Counted from the stretch's first letter, positions 32,601 to 33,413 are shown. The stretch: 51,052 nt of DNA from Salpingoeca rosetta (GCA_033442325.1 JAWQFM010000036.1:252506-303557); one strand, 5' to 3'. The notes: generated by a model from the letters alone, not told the origin. Numbers and translations: made by a program.

Positions 32601-33413
32601 AACTCTGGTGCAGACTGCCCTGTCGTGCTGTCTGATCCAACGTCTACCAGCCCCACGTGCTTTCCTGGTTGGGCCGAGGTGATTCTGGAGAGCGGCGAGC
32701 GTGTGCAGCTGCGGAACCTCAAGACTGGCGACCGCGTGCTTTGCCTGCAGGCATCGGCCGGCAACGCCCTCGGCTACTGCGAGCTCAAGACTTTCCAGCA
32801 CGTGGAGCTGAACGGTACCACGACGTCTGTCGAGCTGCACTACACGGACAAGGACGGCAACCCCGCACTGATGTCCGCAACACCGGACCACTTTGTATTC
32901 CGCGCGGACGAGGACGTACACCTCGCTGACGGCTTGACGGTGCAGCCTGCAGGCGAGTTCATCTTCACTGGCGAGTTTGCTGTTGGCGACCGCCTGCTGC
33001 GCTACGACGCCGACGTTGGTGTCGTGTACACCGTGAACATCACCAGCATCACGTACGCTATCGAGCCAGACTACTTCACGCCGCTGACGGACGATGGCTC
33101 CACGCTCTTTGTTGAAGACGTGTTTGCGTCCTCGTTTGCCATCTTGGAGAGTCCTGATGTCATCCGCCTCGTCCTGGCGCCCATCTGGCAGAACGACGAC
33201 GCACGCTTCACAGAGCCGACGGCAGGCAAGGACTTCCCCGAGGGCCTGCACCCGTTCACGACGCAGCTGTACTCCATCTTCCTCGCGGCAGAGATGAACG
33301 GCCAGGCGATTGACGTTGAGGGCATGGCCACCGCCATCGCCCAGCAGCTCGCCGTCGGCCACGTCTTCACGCAGCAGGAGATGCTCCAGCTCATTCCAAA
33401 CTACATCAGCTGA
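29646..33413 (+). CDS. Hog (Hedgehog-type Hint + SRR-like) secreted mucin-like protein, paralog 1 (Hoglet-like). Exons 29646-29780, 30135-30231, 30352-30396, 30588-30682, 30886-30993, 31193-31642, 31796-31959, 32114-33413.
   Basis: Signal peptide MAAFVAATALLVASFGVSDA, Cys-rich exons and two poly-Thr tracts. Hint N-terminus [29 protein letters not shown] (Cys codon 32658), block B ATPDH, C-terminal [26 protein letters not shown]-like IRLVLAPIWQ...GLHPFTTQLY. All junctions are GT-AG and in phase. Confidence 0.9.

Follow-up and report, generated by a model that had tools for sequence, protein, structure and literature searches.

The 51,052-nucleotide stretch of Salpingoeca rosetta DNA analyzed here (GCA_033442325.1 JAWQFM010000036.1:252506-303557, hereafter the window) contains two convergent genes, gene 1 on the plus strand and gene 2 on the minus strand, each of which ends in a Hog domain made of a Hint module, a region resembling Hedgehog's (Hh) sterol recognition region (SRR), and a helical extension. 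Both Hogs are genuine Hedgehog-type modules, predicted to be self-cleaving, and the two genes are further members of the known choanoflagellate Hoglet/Hog kind. A preliminary description of this DNA had taken their unusual active-site residues as signs of altered chemistry. Judging from the alignments reported below, these residues are the normal family signature of a choanoflagellate Hog clade and no local oddity. Our overall reading, to which we give a probability of about 0.6, is that these are Hogs of the known Hoglet kind with clade-signature residues, which would form the usual thioester and resolve it as a sterol ester in one subtype (His-type) and by hydrolysis in the other (Asn-type).

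Both genes end in a Hog domain of the Hedgehog type

The features of gene 1 that bear on this reading are the following.

31674-33413, plus strand: open frame of gene 1, with the Hog module at its 3' end
32658-33410, plus strand: gene 1 Hog (Hint, SRR-like region and helical extension), 251 amino acids, His-type, i.e. group A (Pfam, AlphaFold2, VIA-align)
32655-32660, plus strand: predicted scissile junction, Thr(-1) at 32655-32657 and Cys1 at 32658-32660, aligned to G257/C258 of Drosophila Hh (model residue 13 on chain residue 258)
32742-32780, plus strand: beta-hairpin between Cys29 (32742-32744) and Cys41 (32778-32780), strands at model residues 38-43 and 49-62
32799-32801, plus strand: His48 (CAC), at the site of the Hh general base D303/D46 (phmmer against 6td6, 1at0 and the D46H mutant 6tyy)
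32880-32891, plus strand: TPDH (Thr75, His78), the block B TxxH, N-to-S acyl shift motif (alignment)
33126-33140, plus strand: motif J, ASSFA, with Ser159 (33132-33134) at the Hh C400/C143 site (phmmer; the register fits the end of the structural alignment, model residue 173 on chain residue 402)
33141-33296, plus strand: SRR-like region, with motif K-like LAPIWQ and motif L-like GLHPFTTQLY (alignment with Hh proteins; helices at model residues 178-190 and 211-225)
33297-33410, plus strand: C-terminal two-helix extension past the Hh end (..QQLAVGHVFTQQEMLQLIPNYIS), helices at model residues 232-244 and 251-261, predicted local distance difference test score (pLDDT) >95

The gene 1 Hog matched the Pfam Hint family PF01079 with E=3e-21 (76.4 bits, the cut-off being 29.7), and in a genome-wide Pfam scan genes 1 and 2 scored 77.8 and 75.4 bits, respectively. 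Both have what identifies a Hog: the Hint profile, Cys1 as first residue, TxxH, and a motif J, here with its Cys changed to Ser. The gene 1 protein ends in ..NYIS, 92 residues past motif J, and no extein follows its Hog. Searching all Protein Data Bank (PDB) sequences by phmmer returned only Hedgehog chains (6td6, 6tyy, 1at0, 7e2i). With high posterior confidence, the Cys of CFPGW was paired with C258, the His of KTFQ-H with the Asp of ILFM-D303 (D46 in Hint numbering), TPDH with TPAH (T326/H329) and ASSFA with ASCYA (C400/C143). The catalytic Cys1 and TxxH, which the preliminary description had reported as intact, are thus found on their Hedgehog equivalents, and the replacements of the Hh sterol-activating Asp by His and of the second conserved Cys by Ser that it had noticed by eye are borne out. 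The residue at -1 is Thr in gene 1 (SPT/C), again as described.

AlphaFold2, given an alignment of 123 relatives, modeled the whole gene 1 Hog with a mean pLDDT of 93.8 and a predicted TM-score (pTM) of 0.89. VIA-align superposed this model on 6tyy with Z 21.6 and a root-mean-square deviation (rmsd) of 1.6 A (145/146 residues), and on 1at0 with Z 21.4 and an rmsd of 1.8 A (145/145 residues), placing model residues 13-173/174 on Hh chain residues 258-402/403. Drosophila Hh-C structures were also the best Foldseek matches (TM by target 0.91), and the next structural matches to the model were inteins (Z ~18). On this model, the residue equivalences to Hh hold structurally at the level of the aligned ranges. 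In that range-level register, the structural alignment to the Drosophila Hint domain that the preliminary description had called for puts the His-bearing site at the Hh general base, and no Asp.

The model continues past motif J with a pair of short helices in the region of LAPIWQ and with a longer helix (GLHPFTTQLYSIF). LAPIWQ and GLHPF..LY align with the Hh SRR motifs K and L (AP.R, G.HWY..LY), at low similarity; we know of no solved SRR structure with which this region could be compared. Nothing in Hedgehog corresponds to the last two helices (model residues 232-244 and 251-261). Given a pLDDT of 93.8 over the full Hog, this protein might lend itself to solving experimentally, for the first time, a complete Hint-plus-SRR unit, something that has been elusive in Hedgehog.

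Gene 2 is a paralog of the other subtype, with the following features.

39830-38355, minus strand: open frame of gene 2, convergent to gene 1 (Hint module in the Pfam scan)
38358-39107, minus strand: gene 2 Hog, 250 amino acids, Asn/Pro(-1)-type, i.e. group B (Pfam 75.4 bits; 61% identity to the gene 1 Hog)
39105-39110, minus strand: predicted scissile junction, Pro(-1) at 39108-39110 and Cys1 at 39105-39107 (alignment, codon positions)
38964-38966, minus strand: Asn48 (AAC) at the Hh general-base position (alignment, codon positions)
38985-39023, minus strand: Cys29 (39021-39023) and Cys41 (38985-38987) (codon positions)
38634-38636, minus strand: Ser158 of motif J (AYSFA), at the Hh C400 site (alignment, codon positions)

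Here the -1 residue is Pro (TFP/C), and the Asn48 codon of group B (AAC) is one transversion away from the His48 codon of group A (CAC). The two genes have in common the Cys pair VLC...GYC (Cys29/Cys41) and the C-terminal motif QQL..GH.F..QEML.L...YI. The "new" Cys pair and the conserved helical extension after the SRR that had been proposed from the sequence were therefore both recovered, the latter as the two terminal helices of the AlphaFold2 model.

The substituted residues are common among Hog relatives, and His at the base site occurs in true Hedgehogs

To judge how unusual these residues are, we searched 1.84 billion cluster representatives exhaustively with HMMER and obtained only 134 relatives (E<=1e-3). 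Among the proteins of other species, the nearest comes from Salpingoeca infusionum and is 34% identical to the gene 1 Hog. Cys1 was present in every relative that covers the position, the block B His in 134/134, and Thr or Ser at the block B Thr in 133. In this sample, drawn with a His-type query, the general-base site (Hh D46) is occupied by His in 74 relatives, Asp in 45 and Asn in 9. Motif J (Hh C143) has Cys in 89, Ser in 22, Asn in 10 and other residues in 13. At -1, Gly is found in 57 and the remainder is spread over 16 other residues, so that about half of the relatives are non-Gly. An independent pairwise alignment to sturgeon Sonic hedgehog gave the same base-site and motif-J calls for 112/133 relatives, and counted His in 62 and Asp in 45 at the base site.

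His at the D46 site also occurs naturally in proteins with both HH_signal and Hint domains, namely those of the annelid Urechis unicinctus (P0099, ..AFFHQ.., HH_signal E=1.6e-73), the spider Oedothorax gibbosus (P0079, ..LFLHR.., E=4.2e-62) and the fluke Calicophoron daubneyi (P0073, ..AFLHR..). Of the seven HhN-bearing representatives sampled, this site is His in five, Asp in one and Tyr in one. The autoprocessing reviews consulted present D46 as a conserved Asp and the D46H result as surprising, yet these annelid, spider and fluke Hedgehogs carry His. The Drosophila D303H mutant keeps its structure (rmsd 0.4 A), its pKa and cholesterolysis, with a wider sterol tolerance (review PMC9163320; PDB 6TYY). 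Likewise, moss, red-algal, alveolate and other non-metazoan Hogs have Ser, Thr or Asp in place of the Cys of motif J, and an extra Cys pair has been gained in some Hog lineages (Burglin 2008, PMC2362128).

Since natural Hedgehogs carry His and D303H is active, His48 is not evidence of altered chemistry. More generally, His at the Hedgehog base site, Ser at motif J and a non-Gly residue at -1 are not to be taken as signs of a new Hog chemistry, and the interpretation of the substitutions as such signs is not supported by the comparison, His being the commonest residue at the base site among the 134 relatives. The proposal that the gene 1 Hog (32655-33413) uses an altered nucleophile thus finds no support for the His-type; among the paralogs, only those of the Asn/Pro(-1) subtype, gene 2 included, may use an altered nucleophile. 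As for the suggestion that redox control differs from that of Hh, it stands insofar as it follows trivially from the missing Cys, but it is not new, this having already been described for non-animal Hogs.

The residue pattern defines a choanoflagellate Hog clade

The clade signature used here was defined in the present analysis and does not come from the literature. It comprises the Cys29/Cys41 pair, a His or Asn base site, a non-Cys motif J and a helical C-terminal extension, and the local copies fit it. The Cys29/Cys41 pair is found in 17 relatives, Cys41 never occurring without Cys29. Named relatives with the pair come from the choanoflagellates S. infusionum, Choanoeca flexa, C. perplexa and Monosiga brevicollis (XP_001744635 and XP_001748974). 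A quickly built maximum-likelihood tree places the Cys-pair relatives and the ten copies present in the S. rosetta genome (see below) in one group of 24 rows with weak support (Shimodaira-Hasegawa-like approximate likelihood ratio test, SH-aLRT, 89), within which the two local groups, His-type and Asn-type, are sisters (SH-aLRT 99).

Across the clade, His or Asn occupies the base site, with Ala or Thr in rare cases. Of the fourteen non-self members, nine have Ser/Thr at motif J, whereas Ile, Val, Gly, Met or Ala is found there in the other five. A helical extension with a loose G..[LMV][ST].[EQ]E pattern is present in most members, related extensions being found in the Hogs of S. infusionum, M. 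brevicollis and Choanoeca perplexa. Asn48 is paired with Pro(-1) not only in the local genome but also in S. infusionum, C. flexa and a Pompholyxophrys sequence, which makes the Asn-type an old subtype that has been maintained.

Cys-pair Hogs were also seen in transcriptomes labeled Pompholyxophrys punicea (rotosphaerid; P0006) and Vermistella antarctica (amoebozoan; P0008). Either the clade is wider than choanoflagellates or these are prey or contaminant sequences.

Ten copies under purifying selection

A Pfam scan of the whole genome (55.4 Mb, 68 contigs) counted ten Hog copies, which fall into two groups. The six His-type copies have Thr or Ser at -1, KTFQHV and [AV]SSFA, and share 90-100% identity with gene 1; in the four Asn/Pro(-1)-type copies, which have Pro at -1 and KT[FY]INV, this identity is 61-63%. 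Cys1, Thr75 and His78 are strictly kept in 10/10 copies. The ratio of nonsynonymous to synonymous substitution rates (dN/dS) between copies is 0.08-0.22 in the His group and 0.12-0.36 in the Asn group, and the Hog domains are therefore under purifying selection and not decaying. The residue pattern is not due to chance, because it is kept in ten copies at these dN/dS values and is shared across choanoflagellate genera.

Sense-strand transcription at a low level is seen at the gene 1 locus, with 20 and 39 stranded RNA-seq reads in two runs (>=98% identity), these reads not being unique among the paralogs. Elsewhere in the genome, at ~965.9-967.0 kb on the minus strand of contig C19, a His-type copy stands in tandem with an Asn-type copy and is truncated after the Hint module: similarity is lost directly after its WQN motif, and it ends early, lacking both SRR-like helices and extension, so that this copy is probably broken.

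Proposed mechanism

Both genes would encode secreted-type, Thr-rich proteins in which a small, Cys-stabilized beta-sandwich cargo is fused directly to the C-terminal Hog. At the X(-1)-Cys1 peptide bond, Cys1, aided by Thr75 and His78, would generate a thioester, and autocatalytic cleavage is expected there. That thioester formation is retained, as the preliminary description held, is a reasonable deduction from the invariant Cys1 and Thr/His, the intact fold and the purifying selection.

In the six His-type copies, His48 would act as the general base and activate a hydroxyl nucleophile held by the SRR-like helices. This nucleophile would most likely be an endogenous 3-beta-hydroxysterol, and the cargo would be released with a lipid ester. 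Both the role of His48 and the sterol transfer are proposed by analogy with the natural His Hedgehogs and the active D303H mutant. The SRR-like motifs (AP.., G.H.[FY]...LY) are kept, including the His of G.H.[FY], and M. brevicollis makes cholesta-5,7,22-trienol and ergosterol, which are choanoflagellate 3-beta-hydroxysterols (PMC4967820).

The four Asn/Pro(-1)-type copies have no base at site 48. Their thioester would most likely be resolved by water or a small nucleophile, giving an unlipidated cargo, as we infer from the behavior of Hh D303N/A. The D303A, D303N, D303R and D303E mutants of Hh speed cleavage by dithiothreitol, so that the thioester still forms, and the failure of cholesterol transfer is described only for D303A (review); its extension to Asn is by analogy.

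In Hh, Cys143 joins Cys1 both in a disulfide and in a branched thioester, the latter having been found essential and likened to the intein +1 nucleophile (Faris et al. 2025, PMC12054796). Going by the residue present, neither this disulfide nor this branched thioester can occur with Ser159, which would at most form an oxyester, as in Ser+1 inteins. As that position is occupied by Ile, Val, Gly, Met or Ala in sister proteins, this clade can probably do without the branched step. The clade would thus offer natural variants, Ser/Thr versus non-nucleophilic, for the 2025 proposal of an obligatory Cys143 branched intermediate. The Cys29/Cys41 pair would most likely form a structural, not catalytic, disulfide; in the model the pair brackets a hairpin about seven residues up-strand of His48, and such a disulfide would suit a secreted protein.

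A more specific version of this mechanism holds that the His48 copies sterylate their cargo while the Asn48/Pro(-1) copies release it unlipidated or to another nucleophile, and that, the whole clade lacking the Cys143 equivalent, the branched thioester is a later addition and not ancestral. We consider this combination doubtful; if true, two natural Hog chemistries would act on the same cargo in one cell.

Several candidate features were examined and discarded. A His-Asp dyad, in which the Asp of TPDH would co-vary with His/Asn48, was rejected (25/83 vs 9/45, Fisher p=0.29), and no other column strongly tracked the His/Asp switch in the aligned relatives (best mutual information 0.32 bits). 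A substitute base near Asn48, the His 2-3 residues downstream (INVHH/INVQH), is not conserved: it is Arg in one group B copy, and S. infusionum and C. flexa have no such His. Cys29/Cys41 as a relocated Cys143 nucleophile was rejected on model geometry, as Cys41, seven residues up-strand of His48 on the strand of residues 49-62, would lie roughly at least 20 A from the active site.

Evidence against the proposed mechanism and alternative explanations

A number of points weigh against the reading we prefer. Cleavage, adduct and disulfide are all inferred for these proteins, and the 5' ends and signal peptides of both gene models are putative. The relatives were sampled with a His-type query, which biases the His/Asp ratio and makes the set no census of Hog domains. 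The paralogs being 93-97% identical, the RNA reads are not assignable to one copy; moreover, they show fixed differences (33116 A>G, 33245 C>T, 33251 C>T), and many of them thus come from a near-identical paralog or another strain. Finally, the SRR-like regions and extensions are near-identical and under selection in both subtypes, which argues that the Asn-type also uses its SRR-like region for something, possibly an adduct, and the retention of Pro(-1) together with Asn48 across genera suggests a tuned, not decayed, reaction.

The alternative that survives best, although we judge it rather unlikely, is that all ten Hogs are pure autoproteases which hydrolyze their thioester, the SRR-like region and extension serving in folding, endoplasmic reticulum retention, sorting or a post-cleavage role. 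The absence of the motif-J Cys that is essential in Hh, the four copies without any base at site 48, and the only loose similarity of the SRR-like region to Hh motifs K and L all fit this view, as do the facts that the first Hh SRR helix doubles as a localization signal (PMC9163320) and that Hh-C is known to undergo bystander hydrolysis on the side (PMC13738340). However, His48, a competent base in Hh, is kept in six copies and in the M. brevicollis and C. perplexa relatives; G.H.[FY]...LY is also kept, and in Hh simulations its His and neighbors contact cholesterol (PMC9163320). Purifying selection is, in addition, strong over the whole C-terminal region.

We find improbable the interpretation, along the lines of the preliminary description, that the substitutions steer the thioester toward nucleophiles of a new class, for example non-sterol lipids, sugars or the side chains of proteins. 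It could draw on the two-helix extension, which is particular to the clade, follows the SRR-like helices and could reshape the binding site, on the wider sterol tolerance of D303H in Hh (PMC9163320), and on the name "adduct recognition region", which Burglin adopted since the adduct of non-Hh Hogs was unknown (PMC2362128). Yet none of the residue changes it lists is diagnostic, given the His of true Hedgehogs and how widespread Ser at motif J and non-Gly residues at -1 are, and no sequence feature points to a sugar or protein acceptor.

Least probable is that these are degenerate, inactive Hogs kept as a structural C-terminal domain, for which one could cite the loss of the Cys143 equivalent, the loss of the base as well in group B, and the fact that Pro at -1 could hinder the acyl shift, by the -1 preferences of inteins. 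Against it stand the strict retention of Cys1, Thr75 and His78 in ten copies and across genera, the dN/dS of 0.08-0.36 and, according to the citation of Snell 2006 in PMC2362128, the reported release of the Monosiga ovata Hoglet by autocatalytic processing.

Comparison with known Hog and Hint proteins

The nearest known counterparts are the Hoglet of M. ovata, as far as its published description goes, and the Hint proteins of M. brevicollis, which like genes 1 and 2 have a Thr-rich N-terminal part, a non-Hedge cargo and a C-terminal Hog. XP_001744635 and XP_001748974 of M. brevicollis further share Cys29/Cys41, the His base site, the non-Cys motif J and the C-terminal extension, although these domains are only 22-26% identical to the gene 1 Hog. 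The local genes depart from the choanoflagellate Hoglet kind in that their cargo has no detectable match to a cellulose-binding-domain family and no specific structural relative, and in that the family is expanded to ten copies of two subtypes.

With Drosophila Hh-C (1AT0, 6TYY), the local Hogs share the Hint fold, Cys1, TxxH and, at low similarity, a putative SRR-like helix-loop-helix with AP and G.H.[FY]..LY; group A also has the same His as the D46H mutant 6TYY and the natural annelid, spider and fluke Hedgehogs. They are not Hedgehogs proper: neither gene has a Hedge (HH_signal) domain, the -1 residue is Thr, Ser or Pro instead of Gly, Ser stands at C400/C143, and the base site is His (A) or Asn (B). 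The extra Cys29/Cys41 pair and ~38 additional C-terminal residues forming two helices set them further apart.

The non-metazoan Hogs of red algae, mosses, dinoflagellates, Cryptosporidium, Jakoba and Glomus (GIN1) described by Burglin (2008, PMC2362128) resemble the local ones in combining a secreted N-terminal cargo with a Hog, in having a motif J with Cys replaced by Ser, Thr or Asp, and in their divergent SRR motifs; the Cys29/Cys41 pair and the helical extension are not reported there. Among the relatives, we also observed fusions of an AIG1-type GTPase to a His-type Hog in the molluscs Potamilus streckersoni (P0069) and Plakobranchus ocellatus (P0122), an architecture like the GTPase/Hog of the fungal Glomus GIN1 (Burglin 2008, PMC2362128).

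The Hint fold and the Cys1/TxxH machinery are shared with class 1 inteins with Ser/Thr at +1. In function, position C143 of Hh corresponds to the +1 nucleophile of inteins (PMC12054796), and the intein +1 residue is naturally Cys, Ser or Thr, as at Hog motif J. The local proteins lack the C-terminal Asn, the C-extein and the splicing of inteins; after their Hint come the SRR-like region and then the protein end.

Cargo domains and gene context

Directly upstream of each Hog lies a cargo domain common to both paralog groups and to S. infusionum.

32277-32657, plus strand: gene 1 cargo, a 127-amino-acid four-Cys beta-sandwich after a poly-Thr linker, directly upstream of Cys1 (AlphaFold2)
39108-39458, minus strand: gene 2 cargo beta-sandwich, 34% identical to the gene 1 cargo, Cys conserved

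AlphaFold2 modeled the cargo as a seven-stranded beta-sandwich with a pLDDT of 91.4. A profile scan found no Pfam family in the cargo or upstream exons, and no HH_signal (PF01085), a domain readily detected in P0099 and P0079 as positive controls (E=1e-73 and 4e-62); a Foldseek search of the PDB found no specific solved relative, returning only generic beta-sandwich matches (best E=5.5e-3). A relationship to a cellulose-binding domain such as that reported for Hoglet was considered, and none was detected by Pfam or Foldseek.

The upstream exons of both genes (31193-31654 and 39951-40997) share a small Cys-containing module (VCRYNGD...RFRFN.C), which is followed by very long poly-Thr runs, reaching ~240 residues in gene 2. 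Near 30994/31192 and 31961/32111 there are candidate GT/AG intron borders. From their predicted modules, genes 1 and 2 look like multi-module, mucin-like chains ending in cargo and Hog.

Between the two convergent genes, on the minus strand at 33734-35652, is a C2H2 zinc-finger gene (..YECDKCSYTT..HLRTH..FKCELC..), whose fingers come after very long low-complexity tracts of Gln, His and Ser and which a 100-N assembly gap interrupts at 35512-35611. The window as a whole has a GC content of ~55% and contains microsatellites as well as poly-Thr and poly-Gln tracts.

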